Source: Octopus sinensis
Lineage: Eukaryota
Length of the DNA: 31,364 nt
Assembly (NCBI RefSeq): GCF_006345805.1
Contig: NW_021834759.1
Coordinates: 1-31,364 of the forward strand
Direction: 5' to 3'
The translations under genes and the position numbers were made by a program. Under the pieces are notes generated by a model that was given only the letters and a program-made list of their open reading frames with translations, made no database searches and was not told where the DNA came from. Position 1 is the stretch's first letter. Each line of letters opens with the position of its first letter. Below are positions 1,352-28,617 of this stretch, piece after piece.

Positions 1352-1429
1352 AGGCTCCAAAGTTTGAAGACAGGTGTGTACAAAGAGAGGCTACATGTCA
1401 GGAATTAGGGGCTGCATCTCAGGCAATTG
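1352..1429 (+). CDS. Exon A (78 nt, phase 1-1): EAPKFEDRCVQREATCQELGAASQAI
   Basis: Acceptor acttggaaatatttatttcag, donor G|gtgagtataaaat, both shared with the other module exons; open frame. Confidence 0.75.
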
Positions 1430-4400
1430 GTGAGTATAAAATAATAGTTCCCAATTGATTTCTGTAAGGTTTACTTCCCCCGAGTATATTGTGCTTGAAA
1501 GAATAACTGAAAACAGCTTCCATTCCTATTTTCCAATTGAACGATTATCTGTATAATAATTGAATTAAAGATATCGATTTACTGTGAGTTTATGAAATAC
1601 CCATTGAGGTTAATGCTGTTGGTAATAATGTTCAAATTAGAAGACACAATAGAGTTAATTTTGTCATTTGGTCACGGAACTCATCATCATCATCATCATC
1701 ATCATCGTTTAACGTCCGTTTTTATAGTAGCATGGGTCGGACGATTTCACTGGCAAGGCAGTAGGTTGCGCCAGGCTCCACTGTGATCTGGCAAAGTTTC
1801 CACATATGTATGCCATTCCTAATGCCAACCACTCCGAGAGTGTGGTGGGTGCTTTTTACGTGCCACCGACACAGGAGCCAGTTGAGGGGGGGGGCTGGCA
1901 TCGACCACGTTCGGATGGTGCTTTTTATTTTCCCCCGGCACAGGGAACCAGTCAGGCGGAACTTGCAACAAACCACTGAATAACATTGTTACAAATTAAA
2001 AGAATTAAAAATCAAATCTCTAAGATTATAAGTATAATGATCATTAACGTTGATTAAATATTAAATTTAGCATTGAACGGTGAACATCTGTTTGCATTTA
2101 AACAAAACATTGGTGTTGACATAAAATATAAAGATAGGAATTAAATATGAGTTCCCTATGTGACTTGATCTCTCAAATCCTTCTTTGTAACCATATATAA
2201 TATACACTTATTATATTGTTTGAACATTTACCATTCATATGGTCATTCTTTTTCTCACTCTTGTTAGATTTTAGATGATATTAATGCTAAAAGAGGCACA
2301 GTTTTCTGAGTGTTTCACCTCTGGTTTTAGTTCTGACTTGATTGTTGCATTCAAATTTGACTACTCCCACAGGTTTAACGTCTTGTTCCCTTCTACTTGG
2401 ATCTCCTGACACTTCTTTATCTAACTTTTATCTTCCATACTCCTCCCATATCTCTACATCTCCTCTCTTGTGCACTAAATCTTCTAAACTCTAGTTTTGC
2501 TTCCAGCTCATCTCTGCTCCGGGACTTCAGCACATTAATATTACACTTCTTCTGAAGTATGCTCACTTCATTTCTTAACAGTTTTCATACATCCTCTATA
2601 CATCCTCTATACTCTGTATTTACAAATACACATCAAGGTTCACCAAGGATCAGTCCTCAGCCCCCTCCTATTGATTATAGTCCTCCAGACAATAAAAGAG
2701 GAATTCAAGACACTCTGCCCCTGGGAGCCTCTTTATGGTGATGACCTTGCTCTTATAGACAAGTCACTGCCAGAATTGGAAACTAAGTTTAGCGTCTGAA
2801 AGCAAGGTCTAGAATCGAAGGGCCTTAGGGTTAACCTAGTCAAAACCAAAGTCCTAGTTAGTAGGAAGGCTGTCAAATCACAACCCCTTTCAGGTAGATG
2901 GCCCTGCTCTATCTGTAGAAATGGAGAGGGTAGAAACTCCACACGATGTAACCGGAGGAAGCTATGGACACATAAAAGGTGCAGCAATATCAAAGAAAGT
3001 TAACCGGGAAAATAGTTTTTGTGTGTGGCAGATGCTCTGGGGCAATAAACACTGAAGGTGTACAGAAAACAGATTCCATCACATGCCAGGGGAAGAAACT
3101 AGAAGTAGTTAATAGCTTCTGTTACCTAGGGGATCAAGTCTGTAGTGAGTGTGATTGCTCTGCGTGTATAGCGACTAGAGTAAGAATAGCCTGGGCAAAG
3201 TTGAGGGAGCTCCTACCTCTGCTGGCAACTAAAGGTCTATCACTCAGGGTGAAAGGTAGACTGCATGATGCATGTGTGCGAACAGCCATGTTACAGGGCA
3301 GGGAAACATGGGCCATGGATGCTGAGAACATGCGTAGGCTTGAAAGAGATGAAGTTAGTATGATTCGCTGGATGTGTAATGTCAGTGTGCAATCACGACA
3401 AAGTTGGGCATAAGAAGCATCAAATGTGGTGTGCAAGAGAGGCGACTGTGCTGGTATGGTCATGTGTTACGTATGAATGAAGACAGCTGTGTGATGAAGT
3501 GCCACTCCCTCACTGTAGAAGGAACCTGTAGAAGAGGTAGACCCAGGAAGACATGGGATGAGGTGATGAAGTATGACCTTCAAACATTGGCCTCACAATG
3601 GCAATAACAGGACACCGGGATCTTGGGAGATACGCTGTGATTGAGAAAACCCAGCAACTAAGGTGAGATTTCAGCCACGCATACCCAGCCCTGTTGACAA
3701 TACTCCTAATGCGTCGCCCGTTATGATATGCTTGAGAAGATATGTTGAGTCAAAACCAATAGTGTAGCTGTGGCCGGTGCCCCCTGTCTGGCCCCCGTGC
3801 CGATGGCACGTAAAAAGCACCAACCAAACCTGACTGATGACAGTAGCCCTTGATTGGCTCCTATGCTGTTGACACGTAAAAGGCACCCACCACACTCTCT
3901 GAGTGGTTGGTGTTAGGAAGGGCATCCAGCTGTAGAAATTCTGGCAGACCAGATTGGAGCCTGGCGCAGCCTTTTGGCTTCCCAGACCCCGGTTGAACCG
4001 TCCAACCCACGCCAGCATGGAAAATCCATACTTTCAATTTGTGATGTTTGAGAGTCCTTTCAGAAATTCGAAAAAAGGTTGCTCTGACAGGATCGTATGA
4101 AGGAGATGCCTGAGGACATTACCCCTACAACGCTCCTATGAATAGAGGGCAGAGGAAATGGATGGATGGATGGATGAAATTGTTTAACTGTTGGTGGTCT
4201 TTGTTCATTCTTTATTGACACATTCTTCTCCATCTTCAGCCTTTACTTCAAAGTGTTTGTTATTTCTGTCAGCATCTTTAGAAATAGAAAAATAGTGTTT
4301 TGTAGTTTCCTTATTTCTTAAGTATTTCTCATTCGTCTATTCACATAATTTCTTTGTTATACAAATATAACCATCCTACCGAAGCTGTAGACCAGAGTTT

Positions 4401-7400: not shown

Positions 7401-10400
7401 GTGAAGTGTCTGTCATGTGTTTATGGTAAGATCATTGATGACCAAACTGGTTGCCATCGGAATTAAGCAAAGATGAGAATAATGTTGGTTAGAGAAGGGC
7501 AGAAGTGAGGGCACAATTTCACGTCATATGTTTAGTGCAGATATAAGAAAGGAAAGACAAACCTAATAAAAGATTGGTGTTATCAAGTGATAATTAAATG
7601 AAATAATGACACAGTTGTTAGATTATGTCGAATGTCTCAAGAGATAAAGGAAATTTTGGAAGGCAGTGTAAATATTGAACTATGACAGGGTAATCCTGTT
7701 CAAACTATAAACATTCTAACCAAAACCATTGTCTTCAACAGTTGATTATCTATGAAAGGAATCCCTGATGTAAAATATAGATTATTAATAAAGATGGAGA
7801 AATTTTTCTATAATGTTTGAAACTTGGAAATATTTATTTCAGTGAATCGAACATTTGAAGTCAAGGAAACACAGACATTGGCTGAACCTGTAGGTGAGTA
7901 TAAAATAACAGCACTTGATTGATTTCTGTAAGGTTTATCCCCTGCTGAACTATTTTGATATCAGAATGATAAAGATCAGCTTCCATTCTTACCTGTCAAT
8001 GGGAAGTTTTAGCATTAAACTAATCATATTAAACATATCGATACTATTGACATTTCATAAAGTATCCAATCAGGTTAGCATGTTTTGGTGAATGGATAAT
8101 TAGAAGCGAAATAGATTTCAGGTTCTCTTTTGGAACAGCCAAATAATATATGTTGTGGTTTAACAGGTGAGGTAATGACAAAGGTTTTGTTTGTTTTATA
8201 CTCTTTAACTCGTTTCAGACTGTCTCCATGCTGGAGCAACACCTTTTTAGTCGAGCAAATCGACCCTAGGACTTATTCTTTGTAAGCCTAGTATTTATTC
8301 TATCGGACTCTTTAGCCAAACCGATGCATTACCTAGACGGAAACACACCAGCACCAGTTGTCAAGCAATGTTGGGAGGACAAACACATACACACATACAT
8401 ACATACATACATACATACATACATACATACATACATACGACGGGCTTCTTTCAGTTCCTGTCTACCAAAGCAATTCACAAGGCTTTGGTTGGCTCGAAGA
8501 TATAGAAGACACTTGCCCAAGGTGCCACACAGTGGGACTGAACCCAGAACCATTTAGTTCGTAAGCAAGCTACTTACCACACAGCCACTCCTACGCCTGT
8601 ATTTTTAAAATGTTTACTGACAAGATATTCTTGTTATTTTAGCTGATGTCTCTTATAATGTGGCAGACTTACAATGAAACGAGTTCCAAATATGACCACC
8701 CTCTTATTTTTCACTGATAATAAATCTATCATTGCATCCAGTAAACATTGTCTTTATTCAAGTGGAAGACGTTGGTTTGCTGCTCAGAAAACCGTTGTCT
8801 CTTTCCCTTTCTTCAAACTTCATAGAGGCTGTATGATACAATACAATCAAATACATTCAAAGAGACATGGGACGGGTTGAAAGAAGAAAGGATAGTGAAC
8901 ACTTTAGATAGCAGCTCCTTAAGAACCCTGCTTACGGTGCTAGGATTCTTTTTGCAGCCGCTAAGAGCAGCAGATTATAACGAAATAAAGATGAAGTGAG
9001 CAAGAATATACAGGAGCTATAAGAGGACCCTGTGTTTCTTGGTTACAAGACCACATCCATACGAACCGTGATTATAGTCCCTATGTTTCAGTAAGTTTTG
9101 ATGGTATTGTATTTTTGCTTCATTTCATAGGAAACACTATGTTGTCGAACATTTCTGTATACGTATTTGACACTAATTAGATGTATTTTATAAAGCATTT
9201 TCGTCCCCTCAGATTTCATTGAACTGAGTTCTCAGCCCCTTCAGAGGCACCGCATTGATTAAGGAGACATCAAAGGAGAGACGGAAGTTTGGTTGATATA
9301 TAGAAGAGGTTGTCAGAAATATCCTAGAGTTTTCAGAATCACTTCCATTCTACCCACCACTTAAGTGGTGTGTGTAATGTGTTTATGGTTAGATCATGGA
9401 TAACCAAACTGGTTGCCATTGGAATTAAGCAAAGATGAGAATAATGTTGGTTAGAGAAGGGCAGAAGTGAGGGCACAATTTCACGTCATATGTTCAGTGC
9501 AGATATAAGAAAGGAAAGACAAACCTAATAAAAGATTGGTGTTATCAAGGGATAATTAAATGAAATAATGACACAGTTGTTAGATTATGTCGAATGTCTC
9601 AAAAGATAAAGGAAATTTTGGAAAGCAGTGTAAATATTAAACTATTACATGGTAATCCTGTTGAAACTATAAACATTCTAACCAAAACCTTTGTCTTCAG
9701 CAGTTGATCATCAATGAAAGGAAAACCTGATATAAAATATAGATTATTAGTAAAGATAGAGAAATTTTTTTTAAATGTTTAAAACTTGGAAATATTCATT
9801 TCAGTGAATCGAACATTTGAAGTCAAGGAAACACAGACATTGGCTGAACCTGTTGGTGAGTATAAAATAACAGCACTTGATTGATTCCTGTAAGGTTTAT
9901 CCCCTGCTGAACTATTTTGATATCAGAATGATAAAGATCAGCTTCCATTCTTACCTTTCAATGGGATGTTTTAGCATTAAACTAATCATATTAAACATAT
10001 CGATACTATTGACATTTCATAAAGTATCCAATCAGGTTAGCACGGTTGGTGAAATGGATAAATTAGAAGCAAAATAGATTTCAGGTTCTCTTTTGGAGCA
10101 GCCAAATAATATATGTTGTGGTTTAACAGGTGAGGTAATGACAAAGGTTTTGTTTGTTTTATACTCTTTAACTCGGTTCAGTCATTTGACTGTCTCCATG
10201 CTGGAGCAACACCTTTTTAGTCGAGCAAATCGACCCTAGGACTTATTCTTTGTAAGCCTAGTACTTATTCTATCGGTCTCTTTAGCCAAACCGATGCATT
10301 ACCTAGACGGAAACACACCAGCACCGGTTGTCAAGCAATGTTGGGAGGACAAACACATACACACATACATACATACATACATACATACATACATACATAC

Positions 10401-13400
10401 ATACATACATACATACATACATACATACATACATACGACGGGCTTCTTTCAGTTCCTGTCTACCAAAGCAACTTACAAGGCTTTGGTTGGCTCGAAGATA
10501 TAGAAGACACTTGCCCAAGGTGCCACACAGTGGTACTGAACCCGGAACCATCTGTTTCGTAAGCAAGCTACTTACCACACAGCCACTCCTATGCCTGTAT
10601 TTTAAAAATGTTTACTGACAAGATATTCTTGTTATTTTAGCTGATGTCGCTCATAATCTGACAGACTTACAATGAAATGCGTTCCAAATATGACCACCCT
10701 CTTATTTTTCACTGATAATAAATCTATCATTGCATCCAGTAAACATTGTCTTTATTCAAGTGGAAGACGTTGGTTTGCTGCTCAGAAAACCGTTGTCTCT
10801 TTCCCTTTCTTCAAACTTCATAGAGGCTGTATGATACAATACAATCAAATACATTCAAAGAGACATCGGACGGGTTGAAAGAAGAAAGGATAGTGAACAC
10901 CTTAGATAAAAGCTCCTTAAGAACCCTTCTGATGGTACTAGGATATTTTTGCCGATGTTAAGTGGGGGAGATTATAATGCACTAAAGATGAAGTGAACAA
11001 GAATATACGGGAGCTATAAGAGGACCCTGTGTTTCTTGGTTACAAGACCACATCCATACGAACCGTGATTATAGTCCCTATGTTTCAGTATGTTTTGATG
11101 GTATTGTGTTTTCGATTCATTTCATAGGAAACACTATGTTGTGGAACATTTCTGTATACGTATTTGACACTAATTAGATGTATTTTATAAAACATTTTAG
11201 AAACATTTTCAATTAGTTGACGTCAATGATCATTAGTGACAAATGTGGTAAAACAGTGATGGTGGAATGGGGTATGAGCAGGGTTTCATATTCCTTGTAA
11301 TGTTGTTAACTACAACATCAGGACGACCGTTTTCTGTCAGGTAAATATTTCTACAGAGGTGTCCATTTTGTCCCCTCAGATTTGATTGAACTGAGTTTTC
11401 AGCCACTTCAGAGGCACCGCATTGATTAAGGGGACATCAAAGGAGAGACGAATGTTTGGTTGATATATAGAAGAGGGTTGTCAGAAATATCCTAGAGTCT
11501 TCAGAATCACTTCCATTCTACCACTTAAAGTGGTGTGTGTAATGTGTTTATGGTTAGATCATGGATAACCAAACTGGTTGCCATTGGAATTAAGCAAAGC
11601 TGAGAATAATGTTGGTTAGAGAAGGGCAGAAGTGAGGGCACAATTTCAAGTCATATGTTTAGTGCAGATATAAGAAAGGAAAGACAAACCTAATAAAAGA
11701 TTGGTGTTATCAAGTGATAATTAAATGAAATAATGACACAGTTGTTAGATTATGTCGAATGTCTCAAAAGATAAAGGAAATTTTGGAAGGCAGTGTAAAT
11801 ATTGAACTATTACAGGGTAATCCTGTTGAAACTATAAACATTCTAACCAAAACCATTGTCTTCAACAGTTGATTATCTATGAAAGAAATCTCTGATATAA
11901 AATATAGATTATTAATAAAGATAGAGAAATTTTTCTATAATGTTTAAAACTTGGAAATATTCATTTCAGTGAATCGAACATTTGAAGTCAAGGAAACACA
12001 GACATTGGCTGAACCTGTTGGTGAGTATAAAATAACAGCACTTGATTGATTCCTCTAAGGTTTATCCCCTGCTGAACTATTTTGATATCAGAATGATAAA
12101 GATCAGCTTCCATTCTTACCTTTCAATGGGAAGTTTTAGCATTAAACTAATCATATTAAACATATCGATACTATTGACGTTTCATAAAGTATCCAATCAG
12201 GTTAGCACGGTTGGTGAAATGGATAAATTAGAAGCAAAATAGATTTCAGGTTCTCTTTTGGAGCAGCCAAATAATATATGTTGTGGTTTAACAGGTGAGG
12301 TAATGACAAAGGTTTTGTTTGTTTTATACTCTTTTACTCGGTTCAGTCATTTGACTGTCACCATGCTGGAGCACCACCTTTTTAGTCGAGCAAATTGACC
12401 CTAGGACTTATTCTTTGTATGCCTAGTACTTATTCTATCTGTCTCTTTAGCCAAACTGCTATGGTACGGGGACGGAAACACACCAGCACCGGTTGTCAAG
12501 CAATGTTGGGAGGACAAACACATACACACATACATACATATATACATACATACATACATACATACATACATACATACGACGGGCTTTGGTTGGTTCGAGG
12601 CTATAGTAGAAGACACTTGCCCAAGGTGCCGCACAGTGGGACTGAACCCAGAACCATCTGTTTCGTAAGCAAGCTACTTACCACACAGCCACTCCTACGC
12701 CTGTATTTTTAAAATGTTTACTGACAAGATATTCTTGTTATTTTAGCTGATGTCTCTTATAATGTGGCAGACTTACAATGAAACGAGTTCCAAATATGAC
12801 CACCCTCTTATTTTTCACTGATAATAAATCTATCATTGCATCCAGTAAACATTGTTGTCTTTATTCAGTGGAAGACGTTGGTTTGCTGCTCAGAAAACCG
12901 TTGTCTCTTTCCCTTTCTTCAAACTTCATAGAGGCTGTATGATACAATACAATCAAATACATTCAAAGAGACCTCGGACGGGTTGAAAGAGAAAGGAAGT
13001 TATATGACTGAAAATATCCAGAAGACTAGAATCCGGAGAATGTCTGTGTGTGTAGAACATGTATTTTAAATCTGGGATACCATATAAAAAGCAAAGAAGA
13101 ATAAAAGGATTCGGATGTAGTATGGCTTGATCTGGCTAATGCTTATTGTTCTGTACCACACACATGGTTGATGGAAACAAGGAATTTCTTTCATAAATGG
13201 GAGGAGATTAAGGATCTGATGATGAGATGCTATAACAGTTTCAAAAATGTTTTCATAGATATGAATTTCACAAAAACTGCCAGGTTCTGGATCTGGAATA
13301 ACTGTAGGTTGCACAATATCAGTTGGTTGGTGATCTTTATAGTTATGCTACTTAGATTAACAGAATGTCCAGAAGAAATTGCTCAACGGAAAGATATTCA

Positions 13401-15736: not shown

Positions 15737-15808
<72 letters not shown>

Positions 15809-18800
15809 TATGGATGCATCTAAAAGCCCATTGATATTACTGATTTAAAATTTAATAAAATGTCCAGCAATGTTGGCGCTGTTGGTAAAATGGCTAAATT
15901 AGAAAACACAACAGACTTCATATTGTCTTTGGAATAAAGGAAAGCAATTTGTCGTTTAAAGGCAAAAACAGATGAGATAATGAGAGAGCTTGTTTGTTGT
16001 ACATTTTAATAAGTTTCCTAATTGTTGTTGTTGTTGTCGGTCATTTTTAACAAGGTGACTAAGTTGAAAATTGTTACAAGTGTGAACACCCTCTCTTTTT
16101 TTCACTGATAGTAAATCTATCATTACATCCCCTAAACGTTGTGTTTATCCCAGTAGGAGACTTTGGTCTGCTGCTGAGACAATTGCTCTCTTTCTCTCTC
16201 CTCAAGATTGGGTGCAAGATACAATGCAATCGATTATAGTGTCTTCATCATCGAATTGGCTGGGTGGTCACTATCCATGTCCTTATTCAGAATTACTGTC
16301 CACCTCGATTGCTTGAGAAACACATCTCCCTTAAACATTCCCCATTTTCTATAGTGGTATGTCACCGACCACTTTATAAAGGGTCCTGAGTACTTTTTAA
16401 TGTGGCAATAGCACTAGAAAGAGTTTCATGTGTCCAACATTGAAACTAGAATAACTGCAGATTGCACAAATCCAGTCACTTGGATTATGCTTGTTATGGG
16501 GATGCTTTTATGGGGATTAGCAGATTTATCAGAAGAAATTACTGAAAGAAATCACTTAAGAAGGCATTCGTGGATGACATAAAATACTAAGAAGAGATCA
16601 GATGTATGTGCAAATAGTTCTGGATAGACTAATTACTCGGTCAAGAATGCAGTTTAAGGCAAATAATTAGCAGTAGAAATTACGCCAAAGATCAAAGAGA
16701 AACCTGTAAAAGGTTTCGGACACTGGCACGCTACTTCGTCATCTAAAACTAGGAGAGGCATTGAGATTAGCGAAAGATAAATCTAAATTACGGGGAGCAC
16801 TTACAAGATTTCCTGCTTCCCGTTTGATTTATATGCTCGTCTTGCTTATATAATTCTGGAGTTTCATTTCTTATGTAACATTTCAGATATATATTCTCAG
16901 TGAATCTTGTACCACTCGACACGACTAAAAGTAGAGTAAAGGAACTTGACTAAATACAGAACTGCCAGTGGCAGTTGACAGCGTTGATCGTCCAAATTGG
17001 TTACTCTGCTAGCTTAATACCGTAACTACGTTGGGGTAGTACGGAGTGCGTTCTCTGTGAACATATCAATTCTGCAATAAGGTGTTCTAGATAACCATAT
17101 CCAAATATTATTGTTCTAGATAACCATATCCAAATATCTACTGTTCTTACACGCAACGTGTACGTGCGCGCCATAACGTATGTTCATCACAGTAATCTGA
17201 GAATGAGCTGTTAGTGAGGTTTTGTGAAAGTGTATTGTGTTTTATGACAGCTGAAACACTTTCTGTTGGTCTAATCATTGCTTACCATTGTTTTTAATAT
17301 ATTTCCTGAATCTGATGACCTTCTGAGGAACTGTGATGCCAGGAGTTAAATATTACCAGCGGCAACCTTTAAGAAAGGGAACCGCTCAGTATGCATCCTA
17401 CGGATGATTAGAACTGGTTCCTTCAGTGGTCAGCGTGGTCTAGTGGGCTGAAACACAAATCAGGAAATACAAGATCACAAAGCTATTGACCAAGGTTCAA
17501 ATCTTGCTGGAGACAGTATTTTAGAAAGTAGCAGGAGGACACCTAGGAGTTATGAGCTGGGTGTGCCCGGCTCATTAAGAGTGTCATGTATAAGGACCGA
17601 AACATTTGTGGGATGGGAGTTCTTCCTTGAAGATCTCTCCTGCTGTGTGTTCACTTGAAAGAGCTTCTCTTGCTTTGTTTTCACTCCGTGTTTATCCTAG
17701 TTGAAGTGGTATGTCATGTGTTTGTAGAGAGATATTTGATGACCAGCTTGGTTGAAATCAGAATTAAGGAGAAATTGAGAAGAATATTGGTTGACCAAAA
17801 CTGGAAGTAAGAGGAGAATACCGTGTTTTAGATGTGGCACAAATGTAAGAAAGGAAAAAAAGCAGAAGAGACACACAGGGTTGTCAAGTGATAATTAAAT
17901 GAGATAGTTACCACATTGTTAGATTATATAGAAAGAAGAAATTTATGAAGATTAGTCTATTTTGTTGTAGTCATGATATTGAGCTATAGATAATATAAGA
18001 ATGCTAACCAAAGCCACAGTGGTCTCCCATCATGCAGTGATGATAGGTAACTCTTGCTATAATATTCTATAGATTATTAATGCAAATTTACACATTTTAC
18101 TATAGATTATAACACTTGGAAATATTTTTTTCAGGGATTCAGCTGCCACGAAAGCAACACCTTATGAATGTAGCAGAGGAATTAGTTGATGACTGGTTTC
18201 TAGCTGGTGAGTATAATTGATTTCTGTCAATTTTACCTTCCCTGAGCTATTTTGTTTGTCGGAATTACTGGGAAATTCTTCCATTTACCGACAGATTTGT
18301 AAAATTCTTTCCACATGTGACAATCCCGATATGTTCCTGGCAGAATGTAATCAAATATGCCTTTTAAAACATGATAGCTTGTCCTTTTAATACAATTTAG
18401 CTGTTATACCTACCGGTTGAAGCATCCACATGCCTCATTGGGTCATTGTTCACTCCCAGGTGTGACAGGATTGTGGTGGGCTTGATCTGTACTTATTTTA
18501 AGCATTTGTAATCCATGTTCCACACATAATTTGTTTTAGGTTGATAGACAAGTGTTACTTCTAGATTGTTTATTGTACTGTCTTGAGAAAAAAAAATCAA
18601 GTATTATTTTGGAGTTCTAAATAAGTTTTTATTAACCTCTCGGAGACTTACTGACACCCTACTCTATTTTACCATCCCTTTTCAAACTCAACTTTTCCCT
18701 GTCATCTCAGTATTAGATCGCCTCCACCGGCTCAATCTTTATTTCTCATTTACTTTTTTGCCTTCATGTGCATGGCCTTGAAGTAATGTTTAAGGATCTG

Positions 18801-21800
18801 GAGAAACAGGGTTCAGTGAAGTAGTGATATAATATTTGTGTAGCTGATGTTGCGCGAAAGCCCTCTACATTTCTACATGTTCCAAAGTCCATTACATTTT
18901 TACATGTTCAAAAGCCCTCTACATTTTTACATGTTAAACCATGTACCCCAGGTCCCTAATTGTTTCTATCTAAATAGTCACATCCTTAGGGACGCTGCTG
19001 TCAATGTAAATGAAATGTAAGTTAAGACTGATAAGATTGTTGAAATGCTAGACTGGAAGTATGTAGACGTGGGTTGCATGCAAGAGGTTAGGTGGAGGGG
19101 TGTCTCAGTAAAACTCTTCACAGACAAAGATTATTGGTATAAAATCTCCTGGAAAGGCAAGTGTGATAGCGCACCGTGAGAAAATGGATGCATAAAGTGA
19201 ACAAGTTAAAGTGTGCGATTGGATCAGGATTACTGCACAAACAAAAGGATCACTTTTATGGTGTTCTCATGCAAACTACTACAATGATGACCTTATTTTT
19301 ATGGTTGGTGGCTTCAGTGAACATGATGAGCAGCGATCCCGTGGATTCTATGGTGTCAAATGAGGAAGAAACAAGGCTATTAGAGTTCTATGTTGTAAAT
19401 AATCTAATGATCTACAACACTAACTTTAGGAAACCATACAGTCACATGATCACCTATCAATATGGTAGGTACACAATCCAGAGTGACTTCACTCACCAGA
19501 GAGTGAGAAAGGTGTTGGGCAGTACATTCTTCTCAAATGAAGAAGACGGAAGTGTGGGAGAGGAGTGTGTACATAGTGGATTTTAAAAAATGACATATGG
19601 GAGTGCTACTATGAAAGGTTATTCAATGAGGAGAATGCATAGGCGAATGAGTTTTATCAATTTGGATTCAATAGGGGGAGTAGCCAACCAAATCGACAGA
19701 AGTATGTTAGATAAAGCAACTAAGGCATATCGATCATGAATCACTGCCAAGGTACTTAAACTATGTGATAGAATGGGCTATGGCCTAGTCGATATATGTA
19801 GTTATTTAGGTGGTGCAGAAAGGTGCATATAGTTAGCCAGTTTGTTTGTGAAGGAAGGCATTATACTCCAGGACTGGTACAGCAGCAAATTACTTCACCA
19901 GGGCTTTTATCACTGCCTTTAAGACCTTAACAAAGCAGTTTAAGATCGGTTGCCTGTGTGAACTCTTTTATGCTGATTACATTGTTCTTATAATTGAGTG
20001 AATAATATAATTAGTAAAGAAATATAAGAAGCAAAAGCTGGAAACACAAGGCATTAAAATTACCTTCGCAAATATCAAAGACCTAGTTAGCAGCAAAACA
20101 TATAGTACACCAACCAACCCCTTCAGAAAAATGGCTCAGGTCAATGTGTTTGCAGAAATTCCATATAGTACAGTCAGTAGATAAATACGATGTGCTGGGA
20201 AGATAACGGAGAAAGTAGTGTTTGTATGTGGCAGATGTGCAGACATAATAAATACTAAGAACACGAAATTCTTTTTTAATGTCCAGGAGGATACTTGGAG
20301 GTAGTTGATAGTTTCTGTTGCTTATGTGATCAAATCTGTAGATGAGGAGGATACGCAGAATGTATAGTTGCTAGAAAAAAGATAGGATGGAGAAACTTCA
20401 GGGAGCTGTTACCTATGTTGGTAGCGGAAGTTGTCTCTCATAGTGAAACGAAGATTGTATGACGCTAGTGCATGGAGAGCAATTCAACATTGTAGTGATG
20501 TGTGATTTGTGAATGCAGAGGACATACAAAGACTAGAAAGAATGGAAGCCAGCATTCTTCACTGTAAGTGCAATGTCAATGTGGATATACACCCAAATGT
20601 GTGCTCAGACGAAAATTGGGTAGGATATACATCAGGGGTTGTGTGCAAGGTTTGGATATAAGATACAGGTGGATGAAAGCAGGTGCATAAAGAAGAGCTA
20701 ATTGCTAAATGTAGATGGAAGTCATGGACGTGGGTGGCCCAGGAAGATGGGGAAGGAATCAATTGGAACCAGTCAGAGGTTGTTGAGCCTCATGGTGTAG
20801 TAGACAAAAAGGGCTGCAATGAATGATGAAATCATCATTCATTGCAGCCCTTTTTGTCTACTACACCATGAGGCTCAACAACCTCTGACTGGTTCCAATT
20901 GATTCCTTCCCCATCTTCCTGGGCCACCCACGTCCATGAATTCCATCTACATTTAGCAATTAGCTCTTCTTTATGCACCTGCTTTCATCCACCTGTATCT
21001 TATATCCAAACCTTGCACACAACCCCTGATGTATATCCTACCCAATTTTCGTCTGAGCACACATTTGGGTGTATATCCACATTGACATTGCACTTACAGT
21101 GAAGAATGCTGGCTTCCATTCTTTCTAGTCTTTGTATGTCCTCTGCATTCAATAGGATGTGGAAAAGTTGTCTAACATATTCACACTTGGAAAAATGGAT
21201 GTATGATGAAGACAATGAACTTGTTAGGAAACTGATTTTATCAGAGCATCTGGCTGGTGCTTCTTGCCTTACTGCAAGACGTATGACAAGACGATAATTT
21301 CTCAAACCATGTTTGAGAAATCCTATTCGACTCAGTAAAAATTATGTTCTTAATGCATATTCTTTTTGCTTAAGCTCTTACACCTAATCTCTATATATCA
21401 ATCTTAAAACCATCCGTTATCCACTTTTCTTACCATTGCAACTTCAGCTGCTGTAATTAAAGGGGGACATCCATCTCCCTTTTCTCTTACCAGTTATCTT
21501 TCCTCTAAGAACCACTTCCCTTGTCATGCATTATGCACTCCCAGCATCATTCCTTGCGACTATATTTCCACTGCATGCCCCTTACCCCTTAAACGTCCTA
21601 TAACTCACTACCTCCACACCAGTGCACCTCCGTCTTCATCCACAAACACTTCTCATCAACTCCTTATTTCCCATCTACCTACGCTTTTATTCAACTTTTG
21701 TTTATTAAACTTTTCCTCCATCACTACCATTATCTTTCTTTGTGTCTTCTCACCTATCTGCTCTCCTTTCTTGACTCACTCTAATTTTCTCAACATTTCC

Positions 21801-24800
21801 CCCAAACCGCTATTCACCAATATCTAAGCGTCCTTCCATATTTGCCATTCACTGCATTTACTCCTAGCCTCATCTCTACTGACTGTCACTCTTCTTTCAC
21901 ACTATCATGACTCTACCCAGCCTCCCACACCCCCGTCCAGTCTCCGTCTTGTTGAGGACTTGTGGTCCTTAATTGTATGTGGTGTGGGGTTGCCGTCTAT
22001 CCCCTGGCCAGTCTGTTCCTCTGTATTTTTGTTGTAGTTCTTTAGCCCCCTGGTCAATTATATAGCCATGTTTCTAAACAGACAAGCACCTTTGTTGATT
22101 ATGTTAATGGACGGGATCAACGCAGCACTGTAAGTTAATGAAACTCTCACCAATTATGAAATAATTATCCTAACAATGGATGTAAACTCAACTTGATTTT
22201 GTTTCTCAATTTTCCTTTATTTTACAATAGCCGTATGGAAAGGCATGAACATCACAATACCTCATTTCCCCTTCATTGAAAGTGTAACATCAAATAACAT
22301 TTAGACGAAGTTTCTATTATTGAAAGGAACGCCTTGTTCCTCCCTATGGTACCTATTTACATTTACCAAGACATGAATTGTTGATGTCTGTGACTACAGC
22401 TCCAGACAATGTCCTCTCAGTTAGCTTATAGAAGTGATTTATCTAAATTAAGAGAGGACATCATCTATGACATTATCGTCTTGTCATACGTCTTGCAGTA
22501 AGGCAAGAAGCACCAGCCAGATGCTCTGATAAAATCAGTTTCCTAACAAGTTCATTGTCTTCCATACTCTTATCTTCCTAACAAGTTCATTGTCTTCCAT
22601 ACTCTTATCTTCCTAACAAGTTCATTGTCTTCCATACTCTTATCTTCCTAACAAGTTCATTGTCTTCCATACTCTTATCTTCCTAACAAGTTCATTGTCT
22701 TCCATACTCTTATCTTCCTAACAAGTTCATGGTCTTCCATACTCTTATCTTCCTAACAAGTTCATGGTCTTCCATACTCTTATCTTCCTAACAAGTTCAT
22801 TGTCTTCCATACTCTTATCTTCCTAACAAGTTCATTGTCTTCCATACTCTTATCTTCCTAACAAGTTCATTGTCTTCCATACTCTTATCTTCCTAACAAG
22901 TTCATTATCTTCCATACTCTTATCTTCCTAACAAGTTCATTATCTTCCATACTCTTATCTTCCTAACAAGTTCATTGTCTTCCATACTCTTATCTTCCTA
23001 ACAAGTTCATTGTCTTCCATACTCTTATCTTCCTAACAAGTTCATTGTCTTCCATACTCTTACCTTCCTAACAAGTTCATTGTCTTCCATACTCTTATCT
23101 TCCTAACAAGTTCATTGTCTTCCATACTCTTATCTTCCTAACAAGTTCATTATCTTCCATACTCTTATCTTCTAACAAGTTCATTGTCTTCCATACTCTT
23201 ATCTTCCTAACAAGTTCATTGTCTTCCATACTCTTATCTTCCTAACAAGTTCATTGTCTTCCATACTCTTATCTTCCTAACAAGTTCATGGTCTTCCATA
23301 CTCTTATCTTCCTACAAGTTCATTGTCTTCCATACTCTTATCTTCCTAACAAGTTCATTGTCTTCCATACTCTTATCTTCCTAACAAGTTCATTGTCTTC
23401 CATACTCTTATCTTCCTAACAAGTTCATTGTCTTCCATACTCTTATCTTCCTAACAAGTTCATTATCTTCCATACTCTTATCTCCTAACAAGTTCATATC
23501 TTCCATACTCTTATCTTCCTAACAAGTTCATTGTCTTCCATACTCTTATCTTCCTAACAAGTTCATTGTCTTCCATACTCTTATCTTCCTAACAAGTTCA
23601 TTGTCTTCCATACTCTTACCTTCCTAACAAGTTCATTGTCTTCCATACTCTTATCTTCCTAACAAGTTCATTGTCTTCCATACTCTTATCTTCCTAACAA
23701 GTTCATTATCTTCCATACTCTTATCTTCCTAACAAGTTCATTGTCTTCCATACTCTTATCTTCCTAACAAGTTCATTATCTTCCATACTCTTATCTTCCT
23801 AACAAGTTCATTGTCTTCCATACTCTTATCTTCCTAACAAGTTCATTGTCTTCCATACTCTTATCTTCCTAACAAGTTCATTAACTTCCATACTCTTATC
23901 TTCCTAACAAGTTCATTGTCTTCCATACTCTTATCTTCCTAACAAGTTCATTATCTTCCATACTCTTATCTTCCTAACAAGTTCATTGTCTTCCATACTC
24001 TTATCTTCCTAACAAGTTCATGGTCTTCCATACTCTTATCTTCCTAACAAGTTCATTATCTTCCATACTCTTATCTTCCTAACAAGTTCATTATCTTCCA
24101 TACTCTTATCTTCCTAACAAGTTCATTGTCTTCCATACTCTTATCTTCCTAACAAGTTCATTGTCTTCCATACTCTTATCTTCCTAACAAGTTCATTATC
24201 TTCCATACTCTTATCTTCCTAACAAGTTCATTGTCTTCCATACTCTTATCTTCCTAACAAGTTCATTATCTTCCATACTCTTATCTTCCTAACAAGTTCA
24301 TTGTCTTCCATACTCTTATCTTCCTAACAAGTTCATTGTCTTCCATACTCTTATCTTCCTAACAAGTTCATTAACTTCCATACTCTTATCTTCCTAACAA
24401 GTTCATTGTCTTCCATACTCTTATCTTCCTAACAAGTTATTGTCTTCCATACTCTTATCTTCCTAACAAGTTCATTGTCTTCCATACTCTTATCTTCCTA
24501 ACAAGTTCATGGTCTTCCATACTCTTATCTTCCTAACAAGTTCATTATCTTCCATACTCTTATCTTCCTAACAAGTTCATTGTCTTCCATACTCTTATCT
24601 TCCTAACAAGTTCATTATCTTCCATACTCTTATCTTCCTAACAAGTTCATTGTCTTCCATACTCTTATCTTCCTACAAGTTCATTATCTTCCATACTCTT
24701 ACCTTCCTAACAAGTTCATGGTCTTCCATACTCTTATCTTCCTAACAAGTTCATTGTCTTCCATACTCTTATCTTCCTAACAAGTTCATTATCTTCCATA

Positions 24801-27800
24801 CTCTTATCTTCCTAACAAGTTCATTGTCTTCCATACTCTTATCTTCCTAACAAGTTTATTGTCTTCCATACTCTTATCTTCCTAACAAGTTCATTATCTT
24901 CCTAACAAGTTCATTGTCTTCCATACTCTTATCTTCCTAACAAGTTCATTATCTTCCATACTCTTATCTTCCTAACAAGTTCATTATCTTCCATACTCTT
25001 ATCTTCCTAACAAGTTCATTTTCTTCCATACTCTTATCTTCCTAACAAGTTCATTGTCTTCCATACTCTTATCTTCCTAACAAGTTCATTATCTTCCATA
25101 CTCTTATCTTCCTAACAAGTTCATTGTCTTCCATACTCTTATCTTCCTAACAAGTTCATTATCTTCCATACTCTTATCTTCCTAACAAGTTCATTATCTT
25201 CCATACTCTTATCTTCCTAACAAGTTCATTTTCTTCCATACTCTTATCTTCCTAACAAGTTCATTATCTTCCATACTCTTATCTTCCTAACAAGTTCATT
25301 GTCTTCCATACTCTTATCTTCCTAACAAGTTCATTGTCTTCCATACTCTTATCTTCCTAACAAGTTCATTGTCTTCCATACTCTTATCTTCCTAACAAGT
25401 TTATTATCTTCCATACTCTTATCTTCCTAACAAGTTCATTGTCTTCCATACTCTTACCTTCCTAACAAGTTCATTATCTTCAATACTCTTATCTTCCTAA
25501 CAAGTTCATTGTCTTCCATACTCTTATCTTCCTAACAAGTTCATTGTCTTCCATACTCTTATCTTCCTAACAAGTTCATTATCTTCCATACTCTTATCTT
25601 CCTAACAAGTTCATTGTCTTCCATACTCTTATCTTCCTAACATGTTCATTATCTTCCATACTCTTATCTTCCTAACAAGTTCATTATCTTCCATATTCTT
25701 ATCTTCCTAACAAGTTCATTGTCTTCCATACTCTTATCTTCCTAACAAGTTCTTCATTACTTCCATACTCTTATCTTCCTAACAAGTTCATTGTCTTCCA
25801 TACTCTTATCTTCCTAACAAGTTCATTGTCTTCCATACTCTTATCTTCCTAACAAGTTCATTGTCTTCCATACTCTTATCTTCCTAACAAGTTCATTGTC
25901 TTCCATACTCTTATCTTCCTAACAAGTTTATTATCTTCCATACTCTTATCTTCCTAACAAGTTTATTATCTTCCATACTCTTATCTTCCTAACAAGTTCA
26001 TTATCTTCCATACTCTTATCTTCCTAACAAGTTCATTGTCTTCCATACACTTATCTTCCTAACAAGTTCATTATCTTCCATACTCTTATCTTCCTAACAA
26101 GTTCATTGTCTTCCATACTCTTATCTTCCTAACAAGTTCATTGTCTTCCATACTCTTATCTTCCTAACAAGTTCATTATCTTCCATACTCTTATCTTCCT
26201 AACTAGTTCATTGTCTTCCATACTCTTATCTTCCTAACAAGTTCATTATCTTCCATACTCTTATCTTCCTAACAAGTTCATGGTCTTCCATACTCTTATC
26301 TTCCTAACAAATTCGTTGTCTTCCGTACTCTTATCTTCCTAACAAGTTCATTATCTTCCATATTCTTATCTTCCTAACAAGTTCATTGTCTTCCATACTC
26401 TTATCTTCCTAACAAGTTCATGGTCTTCCATACTCTTATCTTCCTAACAAGTTCATTGTCTTCCATACTCTTATCTTCCTAACAAGTTCATTGTCTTCCA
26501 TACTCTTACCTTCCTAACAAGTTCATTGTCTTCCATACTCTTATCTTCCTAACAAGTTCATTGTCTTCCATACTCTTATCTTCCTAACAAGTTCATTATC
26601 TTCCATACTCTTATCTTCCTAACAAGTTCATTGTCTTCCATACTCTTATTCCTAACAAGTTCATTGTCTTCCATACTCTTATCTTCCTAACAAGTTCATT
26701 ATCTTCCATACTCTTATCTTCCTAACAAGTTCATTGTCTTCCATACTCTTATCTTCCTAACAAGTTCATTGTCTTCCATACTCTTATCTTCCTAACAAGT
26801 TCATTGTCTTCCATACTCTTATCTTCCTAACAAGTTCATTGTCTTCCATACTCCTCCCATACCTGAAACTATCTCCTTTCTTGTACATTATCTCTGATTC
26901 TTTCAAGAATCTCACATTTTCTTCCAGATCATTTCTTCCCCCAGAATCTCTCTTCACATTTCTAGTGAAATATGCTCGCATCATTTCTTGCCAGTTTTCA
27001 TACATCCTCCATATTCAATGTAAAATAGCATGTAACAAATACACATCATATAATAATCTGTGGTTCATTTGGAGACACATTGTTGTTCTTACTACGAACT
27101 GTTCGTGTATATCTGCTACATAAACCCTTCCCCTCTATCAATATGACTACAATTCCACTGCACCTATTAAGTACACCATATAGTATTCCTATTACCCCAC
27201 ATTCTATTATCCTGCTTATCAGATATGGTGACTTCCCAGCAGTTGATGCATGTGTTTGGATGCAGTGATTCCTTTGGAATTGAAACCTTGTATGTGTATG
27301 GTGTAGATGGTGGTGACTCCTACCTTCTTTCTTACAAACTAAAACTCTTCTCATTTACAGGTCTACTTAAAAACCTCTCCATTATTAGAATTTCTGTAAA
27401 CTGTGGCCTTGATCCTTAGACAGATATCTTCATTATGAGTCATGAACCCAGAAAAGTTAGTCTGATGTCCCCTATAACATGTGATGTGTACCAAAGTGTA
27501 TTATATGTTGCGCTTTGTGTCATTGAGGTCAATCGGGTATTTTGTCTATTTGTATTTTAATTATCTGAGGTGTACCTAATATGACTGATATTGTTTGATA
27601 TACTAGTCCCCACTTTCTACATATTTCTAAATTTTGAAACTTTATAATTATTAATTAGCCAGAGGAGATCAGTTAGTGTGACTGCTTCTTCTCTCTGATG
27701 GTCGTTCAGGCTCTCATACACTTTGGCCTACACAAACCCTTCTACCATTTGTTTACCATAAATTTTCTCAATTGTAATTTTCAAATTTATTTTTAATTTC

Positions 27801-28225
27801 TTTTCCATCGTCATCCTTTATTATTCATTTATTCCAGCTTCTCCGATATTCTTCTCAACATCCTTAGAAATAGACAACAATGTCGAATATGAATCCTAAT
27901 TATTTTTACTTCTCCACTGATGTCGTTTCTTTAGTAAATTTATAACAACCTTCAGTACTCATCGTTTATATTATTGTTAATGTTGTTGCAGTCATTTCTT
28001 GTTGTTTCTTTTGCAGGTATTTTGTTAGAAATAAAATCTACCAAGCTGTATATTCTCAACCGTAACATTCGTAATGACGTTGTAAAACGGAACTATGAGA
28101 TGTTGTGTGAATGGTTTATGACTTGTGATCCAAAGAGATGTACATTCGATACATTGAAAGACGTCCTTAAAGAGATAGACTGTTATGGTGCGCTTGAATG
28201 TCTACCACGAGGCGTAATAAAGTGA
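1352..28225 (+). CDS. Spliced gene, 5'-partial: repetitive linker plus C-terminal Death-fold domain. Exons 1352-1429, 7843-7893, 9805-9855, 11970-12020, 14509-14559, 15367-15417, 18135-18206, 28017-28225
   Basis: All internal exons have AG/GT ends, lengths divisible by 3, phase 1-1, and no stops. Joined: EAPKFEDRCVQREATCQELGAASQAI (VNRTFEVKETQTLAEPV)x3 VRPKFKEKASQRVAEPV VRPKFKRKASQRVAEPV GIQLPRKQHLMNVAEELVDDWFLA GILLEIKSTKLYILNRNIRNDVVKRNYEMLCEWFMTCDPKRCTFDTLKDVLKEIDCYGALECLPRGVIK*. The last ~90 aa fit the Death-domain pattern (VAEEL..dW..aG..L.i ... ML.eW ... T...L..vL.eI). Confidence 0.75.
1682..1976 (-). mobile_element. RTE-family LINE/SINE 3' end with (ATG)n tail
   Basis: (CAT)8-cgtttaacgtccgt followed by sequence homologous to the RTE 3' UTRs at 3670-4020 (opposite strand) and 28618-28900. 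Confidence 0.8.
2004..2358. repeat. ~350-bp direct duplication, copy 2
   Basis: Matches 111-460. Confidence 0.9.
2360..2600 (-). mobile_element. Old degenerate RTE LINE C-terminal relic
   Basis: Minus strand reads RNEVSI...ELEAKL...AQERR...IKKCQEIQVEG, resembling the RTE C-terminus (cf. RDEVSM...VQERRL...KCHSLTVEG at 3340-3530). Confidence 0.6.
2620..4022 (+). mobile_element. 5'-truncated RTE-clade non-LTR retrotransposon (RT C-half, C-terminus, 3' UTR), frameshifted
   Basis: VHQGSVLSPLL, PWEPLYGDDLAL, LEVVNSFCYLGD, RLCWYGHVLRM and GRPRKTW motifs across shifted frames; 3' UTR ends gaaccgtccaaccca. Confidence 0.9.
5180..7090 (+). mobile_element. Decayed Sola-type (DDD) DNA transposon; transposase relic ~6040-7075
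   Basis: HHFIAE...LLDFTE*NYSFVVQDALQGFH...IHPFTIYYK, SICVISDCLKHD, YFSDGAADQYKN and VEWHF motifs with stops and frameshifts. Subfamily and termini unresolved. Confidence 0.6.
7843..7893 (+). CDS. Exon B1 (51 nt): VNRTFEVKETQTLAEPV
   Basis: tatttatttcag|TGAATC...CCTGTAG|gtgagtata; phase 1-1, open. Confidence 0.72.
8195..8598 (-). mobile_element. tRNA-derived SINE with internal (CATA)11
   Basis: Minus-strand head aggcgtaggagtggctgtgtggtaag (A box), ggttcagtccc (B box), then ccttgggcaagtg core. Confidence 0.85.
9805..9855 (+). CDS. Exon B2 (51 nt): VNRTFEVKETQTLAEPV
   Basis: tattcatttcag|...CCTGTTG|gtgagtata. Confidence 0.72.
10157..10596 (-). mobile_element. SINE paralog with (CATA)18
   Basis: Same position within the module as 8195-8598. 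Confidence 0.85.
11970..12020 (+). CDS. Exon B3 (51 nt): VNRTFEVKETQTLAEPV
   Basis: Identical to exon B2, same splice sites. Confidence 0.72.
12322..12702 (-). mobile_element. SINE paralog with ~12 CATA units and a ~38-bp internal deletion
   Basis: acgacgggc joined directly to tttggttgg. Confidence 0.85.
13000..13730 (+). mobile_element. Relic of a restriction-like-endonuclease (R2/NeSL/HERO-type) LINE reverse transcriptase
   Basis: CVEHVF*IWDTI*KAKK, VVWLDLANAYCSVPH (from 13114), GITVGCTIS; many stops. Confidence 0.7.
14509..14559 (+). CDS. Exon C1 (51 nt): VRPKFKEKASQRVAEPV
   Basis: tgtttatttcag|TGCGTC...CCAGTTG|gtgagtata; phase 1-1. Confidence 0.72.
15367..15417 (+). CDS. Exon C2 (51 nt): VRPKFKRKASQRVAEPV
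   Basis: Same splice sites; GAG to AGG (E to R) relative to C1. Confidence 0.72.
15741..15804. repeat. (TC)~32 microsatellite
   Basis: Direct reading; the paralog at 14879-14898 is (TC)10. Confidence 0.95.
16330..17640 (+). mobile_element. Second R2/HERO-type LINE relic, paralogous to 13000-14050
   Basis: AFVDDI (gcattcgtggatgacata) and tgcaaatagttctgg are shared with ~13400-13455; 17270-17380 resembles 13900-14050. Boundaries approximate. Confidence 0.5.
18135..18206 (+). CDS. Exon D (72 nt): GIQLPRKQHLMNVAEELVDDWFLA, Death-domain helix 1 and start of helix 2
   Basis: acttggaaatatttttttcag|...CTAGCTG|gtgagtataa; joins in frame to 28017. Confidence 0.8.
18857..18936. repeat. ~27-bp minisatellite, 3 copies
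   Basis: aaagccctctacatttytacatgtt unit, middle copy diverged. Confidence 0.8.
18990..20760 (+). mobile_element. Degenerate, internally deleted RTE LINE (APE, RT, C-terminus)
   Basis: VDVGCMQEVRWRG (endonuclease), YYERLFNEEN, ELFYAD, LEVVDSFC and GRGWPRK-like remnants. Confidence 0.8.
20510..21151. repeat. Foldback palindrome: 320-bp arms, 2-nt loop, 1 mismatch
   Basis: 20510-20829 is the reverse complement of 20832-21151 except 20721/20940; the mirrored ORFs 20559-20762(-) and 20899-21102(+) differ by one residue. Confidence 0.97.
21208..22562. repeat. Perfect 91-bp inverted repeat pair (21208-21298 / 22472-22562)
   Basis: Base-by-base reverse-complement match. Confidence 0.95.
22540..26853. 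repeat. 35-bp tandem satellite, ~123 copies
   Basis: Unit ttcctaacaagttcattgtcttccatactcttatc; main variants cattg/catta/catgg and occasional 1-nt deletions; no spacers. Confidence 0.97.
26841..27015 (-). mobile_element. RTE C-terminal relic from which the satellite emerges
   Basis: Homologous to 2430-2595 (cttccatactcctcccata...tcatttctt..cagttttcatacatcctc); reads RYGRSMEDNELVRK. Confidence 0.65.
28017..28225 (+). CDS. Terminal exon E: Death-domain helices 2-6 and stop
   Basis: Pyrimidine tract gttgtttcttttgcag; G|GT ATT TTG...AAG TGA; MLCEW and TFDTLKDVLKEI motifs. Confidence 0.82.
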
Positions 28226-28473: not shown

Positions 28474-28617
28474 GATAAACCTTCAAATTTTCGTTTGTTC
28501 TTGTTGCTGTATATCTAAGCACCTCCCTAAACGCTTTCATTTTGTTTTATAGTCAGATTTCACATCCTCTGGTATGTTGATAGTCATCTACCTTCAGAGA
28601 ATTATGTATATATATAT

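Follow-up and report, generated by a model that had tools for sequence, protein, structure and literature searches.

An array of duplicated mini-exons probably forms the spacer between the RING and Death domains of an octopus gene

The stretch of Octopus sinensis DNA analyzed here (31,364 nucleotides, called the window below) is an entire unplaced scaffold, VCDQ01005689.1 of assembly GCA_006345805.1. It holds the 3' two-thirds of the gene LOC118761746, which belongs to a family of octopus genes whose products combine ankyrin repeats, a RING domain and a C-terminal Death domain. The part of the protein which joins the RING to the Death domain is probably encoded by a recombination-prone array of cassette mini-exons, which consists here of six spacer modules: one of type A, three of type B and two of type C.

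The mini-exons are recognized by their splice signals. The acceptor context that was scanned, ACTTGGAAATNTTNNTTTCAG (21 nt, also written as ACTTGGAAAT.TT..TTTCAG), has seven matches in the window, all on the + strand and without any mismatch, compared to 0.10 expected by chance, and all seven directly precede the proposed exons A, B1–B3, C1, C2 and D. The donor context GGTGAGTATAA (11 nt, a G followed by GTGAGTATAA) matches without mismatch at precisely the seven proposed exon ends (positions 1429, 7893, 9855, 12020, 14559, 15417 and 18206). The 10-nt element ACTTGGAAAT extends outside the usual polypyrimidine/AG consensus, and there is no obvious match to the yUnAy branch-point motif within it. 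The exons and the tandem units are the following:

1352–1429, + strand: module exon A (APKFEDRCVQREATCQELGAASQAI), 78 nt, phase 1-1, exact acceptor and donor motifs
7406–13000, + strand: tandem array of three B units, each with intron flank, exon, intron and an (ACAT)n microsatellite, from self-BLAST
7843–7893, + strand: module exon B1 (NRTFEVKETQTLAEPV), 51 nt, phase 1-1, exact motifs, in the first of the three tandem units of ~2 kb
9805–9855, + strand: module exon B2, 51 nt, phase 1-1, exact motifs
11970–12020, + strand: module exon B3, 51 nt, phase 1-1, exact motifs
14307–16068, + strand: tandem duplication of the C unit in two copies of ~0.86 kb (14307–15162 against 15160–16068, 91%)
14509–14559, + strand: module exon C1 (RPKFKEKASQRVAEPV), 51 nt, phase 1-1, exact motifs
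15367–15417, + strand: module exon C2 (RPKFKRKASQRVAEPV), 51 nt, phase 1-1, exact motifs
18135–18206, + strand: exon D, first exon of the Death domain, 72 nt, phase 1-1, exact motifs
28017–28225, + strand: terminal coding exon E, remainder of the Death domain, with the TGA stop at 28223–28225

The lengths of all seven mini-exons (78, five times 51, and 72 nt) are divisible by three, and phase 1, which starts at the third base, is the only frame that is open through all of them. Exon E, which is preceded by a good polypyrimidine tract, keeps this frame until its TGA. The last base of every mini-exon is a G, and phase 1-1 with a terminal G is also found in the O. vulgaris locus L001 and in the paralog loci L002, L003 and L004. 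Since all mini-exons end in G, the split codon (G/NN) is decided by the downstream exon alone. Thus the modules, which are all phase 1-1, end in G and have near-identical splice signals, can be joined in any subset without a frameshift. An earlier note, made from the letters of the window, had proposed this array of seven mini-exons with common acceptor and donor contexts, and their symmetric phases and lengths of 51, 72 and 78 nt in frame with a terminal exon; the motif scans confirm the former and the translation the latter.

The concatenated product of these exons has 203 residues and is 100% identical over its full length to XP_036355787.1 (LOC118761746, uncharacterized, partial, Octopus sinensis). 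The RefSeq span of the gene on the scaffold (1352–28225) is the same as that of the earlier note, and since RefSeq annotates all eight exons, the array is not hidden, as the note had described it. The splicing that it proposed is supported by two annotations, XP_036355787.1 and P0002, an EVM model of O. vulgaris (326 aa, named 'MIB2-like isoform X1') which matches the full query. P0002 has three modules fewer than the O. sinensis product and one junction residue, E for V, and is otherwise the same; it is built from the exons A, B, C, D and E, and omits one of the two intact genomic C exons. The O. vulgaris annotation pipeline draws on alignments of Iso-Seq and RNA-seq data besides other evidence (PMC10700109), and this model therefore gives the splice sites a support that is partly independent.

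The corresponding 60-kb locus of O. vulgaris, L001, is colinear with the window at ~98% identity and shows the missing 5' part of the gene, which consists of three ankyrin-repeat exons and one RING exon. The latter ends in ...GAATTTG, followed by gtaagataat, 180 nt upstream of the point equivalent to position 1 of the window. The genomic order after the RING exon is A, one B, two C, D and E. Exon A is identical in O. vulgaris (L001 56019–56096), C1 and C2 have their counterparts at L001 65306–65356 and L001 66168–66218, and the protein encoded by exon E is 100% identical.

Exons D and E are predicted to encode a Death domain. The sequence of D+E matches the Pfam Death family (PF00531) with 22.3 bits (E = 1.5e-4), just short of the gathering cut-off of 22.6 bits, and a single-sequence search of D+E against PDB sequences gives no significant match. 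A profile made from five family members matches the Death domain of RIPK1 best (7e-8), and it also matches those of ANK3 (ankyrin-3), PIDD, Fas, CRADD and FADD. The AlphaFold2 (AF2) model of the 93 residues of D+E, computed from a 38-sequence alignment, has a predicted local distance difference test score (pLDDT) of 89.2 and a predicted template modeling score (pTM) of 0.80. When this model is compared with the PDB using Foldseek, the best 40 matches are all Death domains, with template modeling scores (TM) up to 0.81; they include RAIDD (TM 0.80) and ankyrin-G (root-mean-square deviation, rmsd, of 1.4 Å), then TRADD, RIPK1, FADD and TNFR1. According to DSSP, the first two helices of the model are fused into one long helix (7–27), and six helices are visible in the lower-confidence AF2 model of the full-length 203-aa product. 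The Death fold that had been suggested for the last 93 residues thus agrees with the Pfam/HMMER and AlphaFold analyses, and with Foldseek.

The octopus domain and the Death domains of RIPK1, RAIDD/CRADD, ankyrin-G, FADD and TNFR1 have the same fold (TM 0.7–0.8, rmsd 1.4–2.5 Å), but their sequence identity is only 15–23%. As in ankyrins, the octopus domain is C-terminal and stands behind ankyrin repeats; unlike those listed, it is connected by a cassette spacer to a RING ligase module.

The earlier note had also counted exon D as a module of the linker, and this does not hold. Helix 1 and the first part of helix 2 come from exon D. This exon lies inside the Pfam Death match and inside the high-confidence AF2 model, and it is the first exon of the Death domain. 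Its flanks are homologous to those of the modules on both sides. The exon bodies A/B, A/C and B/C are significantly similar when their alignments are compared with shuffles, whereas the alignment of the body of D with those of A, B and C scores no better than shuffled sequence, and D was therefore rejected as a demonstrable sequence paralog of the modules. What points to a relatedness of D to the modules is the flank homology alone. A duplicated D unit may be the ancestor of the modules, its body having then diverged freely; alternatively, the flanks of D and of the modules may have been homogenized.

The tandem structure of the array was analyzed by self-BLAST with a 35-bp satellite masked, as this satellite swamped the unmasked repeat listing. 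Identity among the B units is 92–93% over 1.5–1.8 kb, with periods of 1962 and 2165 nt, and between the C units it is 91% over 0.9 kb. Those of differing type are 63–76% identical over 200–670 nt, exon included. In a seven-way alignment the homologous sequence next to each exon measures ~200 nt on the upstream side and ~250 nt on the downstream side, and BLAST pairs stretch the upstream intron homology to ~400 nt, so that the several hundred base pairs of homologous intron flank which the earlier note had seen are indeed there. Each B unit contains an (ACAT)n microsatellite (8385–8438, 10355–10436 and 12520–12577, with 13.5, 20.5 and 14.5 copies), and the differences in copy number explain part of the difference between the B-unit periods.

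The number of units differs between the two species: there are three B units in O. sinensis compared to one in O. vulgaris, while both C copies are present in both. Among paralogs, the number of modules ranges from none to about seven. The idea that the array can be expanded by copy number is thus well founded. The single B unit of O. vulgaris is a mosaic: its 5' end is identical to that of B1 (198/198) and its 3' end is closest to B3, a pattern to be expected after an unequal crossover, or else after an assembly collapse. The divergence among B1–B3 is ~2–10% per 200-nt window, compared to ~2% between O. sinensis and O. vulgaris, two species that split ~2.5 My ago (PMC10700109); the B triplication therefore predates this split. 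The three duplication ages that had been read from the array (an old split between types, then the three B and the two C) hold within the window, but they are confounded by the near-identity (93–99%) of the A and B units to units of other paralog genes. A 200-nt patch upstream of the O. vulgaris B exon (L001 ~62400–62600, alignment columns 200–400) matches each of the three O. sinensis B units at only ~84%, whereas the adjacent 200-nt windows are 95–100% identical; this patch may have been converted from another paralog.

Similar units are found in other genes of the family. The A unit of the window, introns included, is 93–100% identical to A units in L002 and L003 (91–97% when the A exons are compared), and the B array together with 1.4 kb downstream is 94–97% identical to L004. 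On the contrary, the D units of the same paralog genes are 54–77% identical, introns included, and mostly 63–77%; a round figure for the units of the Death domain is ~65–70%. Since introns are involved in both comparisons, the gap between A/B and D reflects differing coalescence times. It therefore appears, from these identities, that modules have been exchanged or homogenized among paralogs, and the history of the units is mosaic. The order A-B-C-C-D-E is also present in the chromosome-level assembly of O. vulgaris, and the mosaic is therefore no artefact of a small scaffold.

The constraint on the array is unevenly distributed. When types A, B and C are compared, 28 of the 29 splice-signal columns are invariant, compared to 51% of the flank columns (Fisher p = 3e-7), while 45% of the exon-body columns are invariant, which is no different from the flanks. 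Within one type, nine A units from three genes give a nucleotide diversity (pi) of 0.065 in the exon and ~0.06 in the flanks; for the 21-nt acceptor context the value is 0.011, and for a 12-nt donor context it is 0. The ratio of non-synonymous to synonymous polymorphism (pN/pS) in the A exon is ~0.44, from nine variants only (three synonymous, six non-synonymous). The acceptor and donor contexts precede and follow every module and D exon in four further loci, and no off-target match to either was found elsewhere in ~215 kb of related loci. In a paralog of O. bimaculoides, a lineage that diverged ~34 My ago (PMC10700109), three of the four contexts are kept with one or two changes (ACTTGCAAAT..., CCTTGGAAAT...), and the context of the fourth module, ACTTAGAAACACATATTTCAG, has about six. 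In these samples, which are small, selection can be seen to act on splice signals and frame, and hardly on the residues of the modules. A weak constraint on residues is what a flexible, probably disordered spacer would be expected to show. Residues 1–114 show no secondary structure in the AF2 model of the whole 203-aa protein, which is only a weak hint (12 sequences, pLDDT 40).

The same architecture recurs in many proteins of O. sinensis, O. vulgaris and O. bimaculoides, with dozens of paralogs. Pfam finds Ank families and one zf-C3HC4_3 in P0002, P0188, P0055 and P0074, and the Death family scores 43.9–45.1 bits in two full-length relatives, P0055 and P0074. A HMMER scan with the Death-domain profile of the family retrieves 435 clusters at E ≤ 1e-3 and 68 clusters (50% identity) at E ≤ 1e-10; the matches reach outside octopus, with a starfish protein among the top scorers, and many O. 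vulgaris models of the family lie on one 12-Mb contig. The number of modules between RING and Death goes from 0 (P0037, P0048, P0056) to ~7 (P0074). The modules have either 17 residues (consensus roughly xPKxE[DE]KxVQTVxExV) or, for the A type, 26 residues, and most members of the family have retained a RING–Death spacer of such composition. A literature search for this octopus family found no paper in the searched library.

Alternative splicing of modules is annotated in several paralogs. RefSeq is not known to make alternative forms from anything but transcript alignments. The RefSeq isoforms of the L003 gene contain one, two or three of its A exons in various combinations, those of LOC115230672 occur with a module, without a module and without exon D, and P0037 is a paralog isoform without any module. 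One paralog gene of O. sinensis has at least 22 numbered isoforms which differ by blocks of 17, 12 and 5 residues, and in O. bimaculoides the difference between the MIB2 forms X1, X2 and one further form is one or two modules. The proposal that the linker is tuned by splicing is thus supported only indirectly, by annotated isoforms of paralogs that differ by whole modules and by the O. vulgaris model, which uses one of two C exons; the locus in the window has a single model. In L003, four A exons have intact splice signals; the second (29195–29272) is used by none of the seven RefSeq isoforms, and the fourth (33900–33974) carries deletions of two and one nucleotides which scramble about seven residues before the frame is restored.

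Taken together, these data argue for an array that grows and shrinks by recombination. Units of 0.9–2.2 kb, each composed of an exon and its intron flanks, have the structure of tandem duplicates, and tandem duplication is the process that would have produced them. The homologous flanks would then promote unequal recombination, by which the array would gain or lose units, and recombination or conversion at the same flanks would exchange or homogenize units between paralogs. At the protein level, the Death domain would dock the putative ligase onto Death-domain assemblies, and the number of modules, set by the genome and by exon skipping, would determine the length and the flexibility of the tether between RING and Death. 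The length of the linker may be functionally important.

Several points weigh against this reading, in addition to the Pfam score of D+E mentioned above. Exon inclusion at this locus rests on automated gene models, with a single model in O. sinensis. Only part of the gene is present, and the scaffold that carries it is small, unplaced and from a gene cluster rich in repeats. Assembly error could affect the count of three B units in O. sinensis, and the single B unit of O. vulgaris could be a collapsed repeat. The predicted disorder of the spacer comes from composition and from an AF2 model based on a shallow alignment. Finally, near-neutral module bodies fit equally well a spacer whose length is functionally unimportant and drifts. 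This last point leads to the possibility that the array is spliced in and yet neutral in function. Unequal recombination in a tandem gene cluster would have generated it as a by-product, the number and composition of modules would drift, and only the frame would be needed. The exon bodies indeed diverge at the rate of introns, pN/pS is not clearly below 1 on so few variants, the A exon of L003 with its compensated frameshift and seven scrambled residues is still annotated as coding, and paralogs with none to about seven modules retain the same flanking domains. However, splice signals that are near-invariant across types, paralogs and ~34 My, including a 10-nt element beyond the consensus, would be hard to account for if inclusion were of no importance, and a spacer of such composition persists in most members of the family. 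A neutral array seems unlikely.

It could also be imagined that the modules are not used at all, and that they are decayed copies of the first Death-domain exon which gene predictors have strung together, the true transcript joining the RING exon to D, or the locus being a pseudogene fragment. The gene is partial and on an unplaced scaffold, the protein cluster to which it belongs has no Logan-derived members (which is uninformative instead of negative), an open frame of 17 codons is plausible by chance in AT-rich sequence (~0.3 per type by our own estimate), the O. vulgaris model skips one of two intact C exons, and a paralog has module-free isoforms (P0037). Yet splice signals far better conserved than the flanks (p = 3e-7), also in O. 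bimaculoides, are difficult to reconcile with unused exons, and the modules are included by two independent pipelines, one of which uses Iso-Seq and RNA-seq (PMC10700109), and by many paralog isoforms that hold them in varied combinations. This makes disuse highly improbable. At the other extreme, the array might belong to a diversity-generating system, in which modules would be shuffled among paralogs, spliced combinatorially into many distinct RING-Death adaptors and subject to diversifying selection, by analogy with the mosaic 'element patterns' of invertebrate immune genes. The mosaic history of the units, the size of the family (68 clusters at E ≤ 1e-10, not all from octopus), the many models on one 12-Mb contig of O. 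vulgaris, the O. sinensis paralog with at least 22 numbered isoforms and exon bodies that are no more conserved than introns would all be expected from such a system. But there is no excess of non-synonymous variants (pN/pS ~0.44), the module types are few and of low complexity, and ordinary concerted evolution predicts the same pattern, so that a diversity-generating system appears very unlikely. A broader scenario, which is speculative and which we consider improbable, is that the array is part of a rapid, cephalopod-specific reshuffling of innate-immune or cell-death ligases of the type Ank-RING-spacer-Death. Modules would be traded among paralogs, a dedicated splicing factor would read ACTTGGAAAT and set the inclusion of modules throughout the family, and the length of the tether, hence the members of Death assemblies that become ubiquitinated, would be regulated combinatorially.

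Mutually exclusive splicing as in the Dscam clusters was considered because the two systems are alike in having tandem paralogous exons, each immediately preceded by a conserved element of the intron; ACTTGGAAAT would then be the selector which pairs with a single docking site. However, neither the window nor the 80-kb locus of O. vulgaris contains an exact match to the reverse complement of ACTTGGAAAT, and matches to it with at most one mismatch are at chance level. Unlike the Dscam variants, the modules are also included together in annotated proteins, up to six of them, and their lengths (78, 51 and 72 nt) are unequal. The octopus array thus lacks the complementarity between docking site and selector, and this model is rejected with near certainty. 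The exonization of a transposable element is unlikely too, as searches with the module proteins returned this gene family alone, and as the 21-nt acceptor pattern matched module exons alone in ~215 kb of related loci.

If the array is, as seems probable, a set of recombining cassettes, the closest known kind would be the tandem array of symmetric cassette exons which encodes a low-complexity spacer, and of which the PEVK region of titin is the textbook case. The exons of PEVK all have a common phase, and whichever of them are joined, the frame is kept. In vertebrate TTN these short exons are duplicated in tandem, encode a spacer rich in P, E, V, K and A and are differentially spliced, and, like the octopus modules, they expand and contract in number by duplication between species (PMC6469411). 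The two systems differ in several respects: titin has about 100 PEVK exons and the octopus array six modules, PEVK is a muscle spring whereas the octopus array separates RING from Death in a signaling protein that is small and probably cytosolic, and only the octopus units carry ~0.4 kb of homologous intron on each side which is near-unchanged among paralogous genes. Tandem exon duplication itself has precedents, therefore, and what is new is the RING-to-Death context and the near-identical intron-exon units that paralogs have in common.

The name 'MIB2-like' comes from a likeness to MIB2/Mind bomb, in which ankyrin repeats are also followed by a RING of the C3HC4_3 type. MIB2 also has an N-terminal MZM region (MIB/HERC2, ZZ, MIB/HERC2) and a REP region; in mammals it acts on the Death-domain kinase RIPK1 in TNF signaling, and MZM binds RIPK1 (PMC5912950). 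In the O. vulgaris ortholog and three full-length relatives (505–563 aa), Pfam detects Ank, zf-C3HC4_3 and Death only, and neither MIB_HERC2 nor ZZ. The octopus proteins thus lack the MZM and REP regions of MIB1/MIB2, have a single RING and carry a C-terminal Death domain that is absent from MIB1/MIB2, and this domain content led us to reject orthology with MIB1/MIB2. The analogy between MIB2 and the octopus proteins with a RIPK1-like Death domain is only suggestive. Vertebrates seem to reach the pairing of a RING ligase with a Death domain in trans, MIB2 acting on RIPK1, whereas this uncharacterized and expanded octopus family fuses the RING ligase module directly to the Death domain.

With its coordinates, the array is a clean natural example of a protein spacer that is built and resized by the duplication of exons in tandem, and it exemplifies a pattern in which splice signals are frozen, exon bodies drift and whole units are common to paralogs. 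For genome annotators, it is relevant that 'MIB2-like', 'ankyrin-3-like' and 'uncharacterized' are database names for one family, and that the number of modules on unplaced scaffolds of this cluster may differ from that in chromosome-level assemblies.

Some relatives depart from the usual form of the spacer. In P0073, P0074 and P0201 each 17-residue module contains a CPxC motif (e.g., ECPRCREKTVKTVAESF, which is repeated), and these modules could form zinc knuckles instead of a disordered spacer; the B and C modules of the window contain no cysteine. Death domains of the family subtype are also found behind a run of PSTSQHE-like heptads in P0064 and after STSQQ repeats at the end of P0077, a protein of 1283 aa which has, by eye, a leucine-rich-repeat-like start and long hydrophobic stretches. 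A repetitive spacer before this subtype of Death domain may thus be a wider octopus habit. The RefSeq models P0012, P0014, P0029 and P0030, all of paralogs, terminate in ...GEYKI(I/T)..., the residues that are obtained when the conserved donor flank GGTGAGTATAAAATA is translated; they enter the intron either through intron retention or because the scaffold is truncated.

The intron between D and E is ~9.8 kb long in O. sinensis, compared to ~1.3 kb in O. vulgaris. A segment of 8.7 kb (18722–27467) is absent from the O. vulgaris ortholog, where the junction is clean (...CAGTATTAGATC directly followed by CCCTATAACATG...). This segment includes the 35-bp satellite TTCCTAACAAGTTCATTGTCTTCCATACTCTTATC (22540–26853), which is present in ~124 copies with 96–97% matches and a strong strand asymmetry (GC skew of about −0.7), and no copy of its unit was found in the 80-kb O. 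vulgaris locus.

Scans of the window for tRNA genes and Rfam families gave no match. Two open reading frames (ORFs), 2979–3413 (+) and 21000–21305 (−), presumably resemble C-terminal pieces of a non-LTR retrotransposon reverse transcriptase; when the longer stray ORFs of the window, these two included, were searched against Pfam, all matches were chance ones below threshold. Downstream of the gene, an ORF of 174 aa (30037–30561, −) without significant match to a family is probably transposon debris. Copies of a GC-rich, SINE-like repeat are present at 1681–1970 (+), 3769–4024 (−) and 28610–29900 (+), each with a (TCA)n/(ATC)n run at its head, and at the 3' end of the window they are followed by tandem sub-repeats of 62–63 nt (28790–29472).

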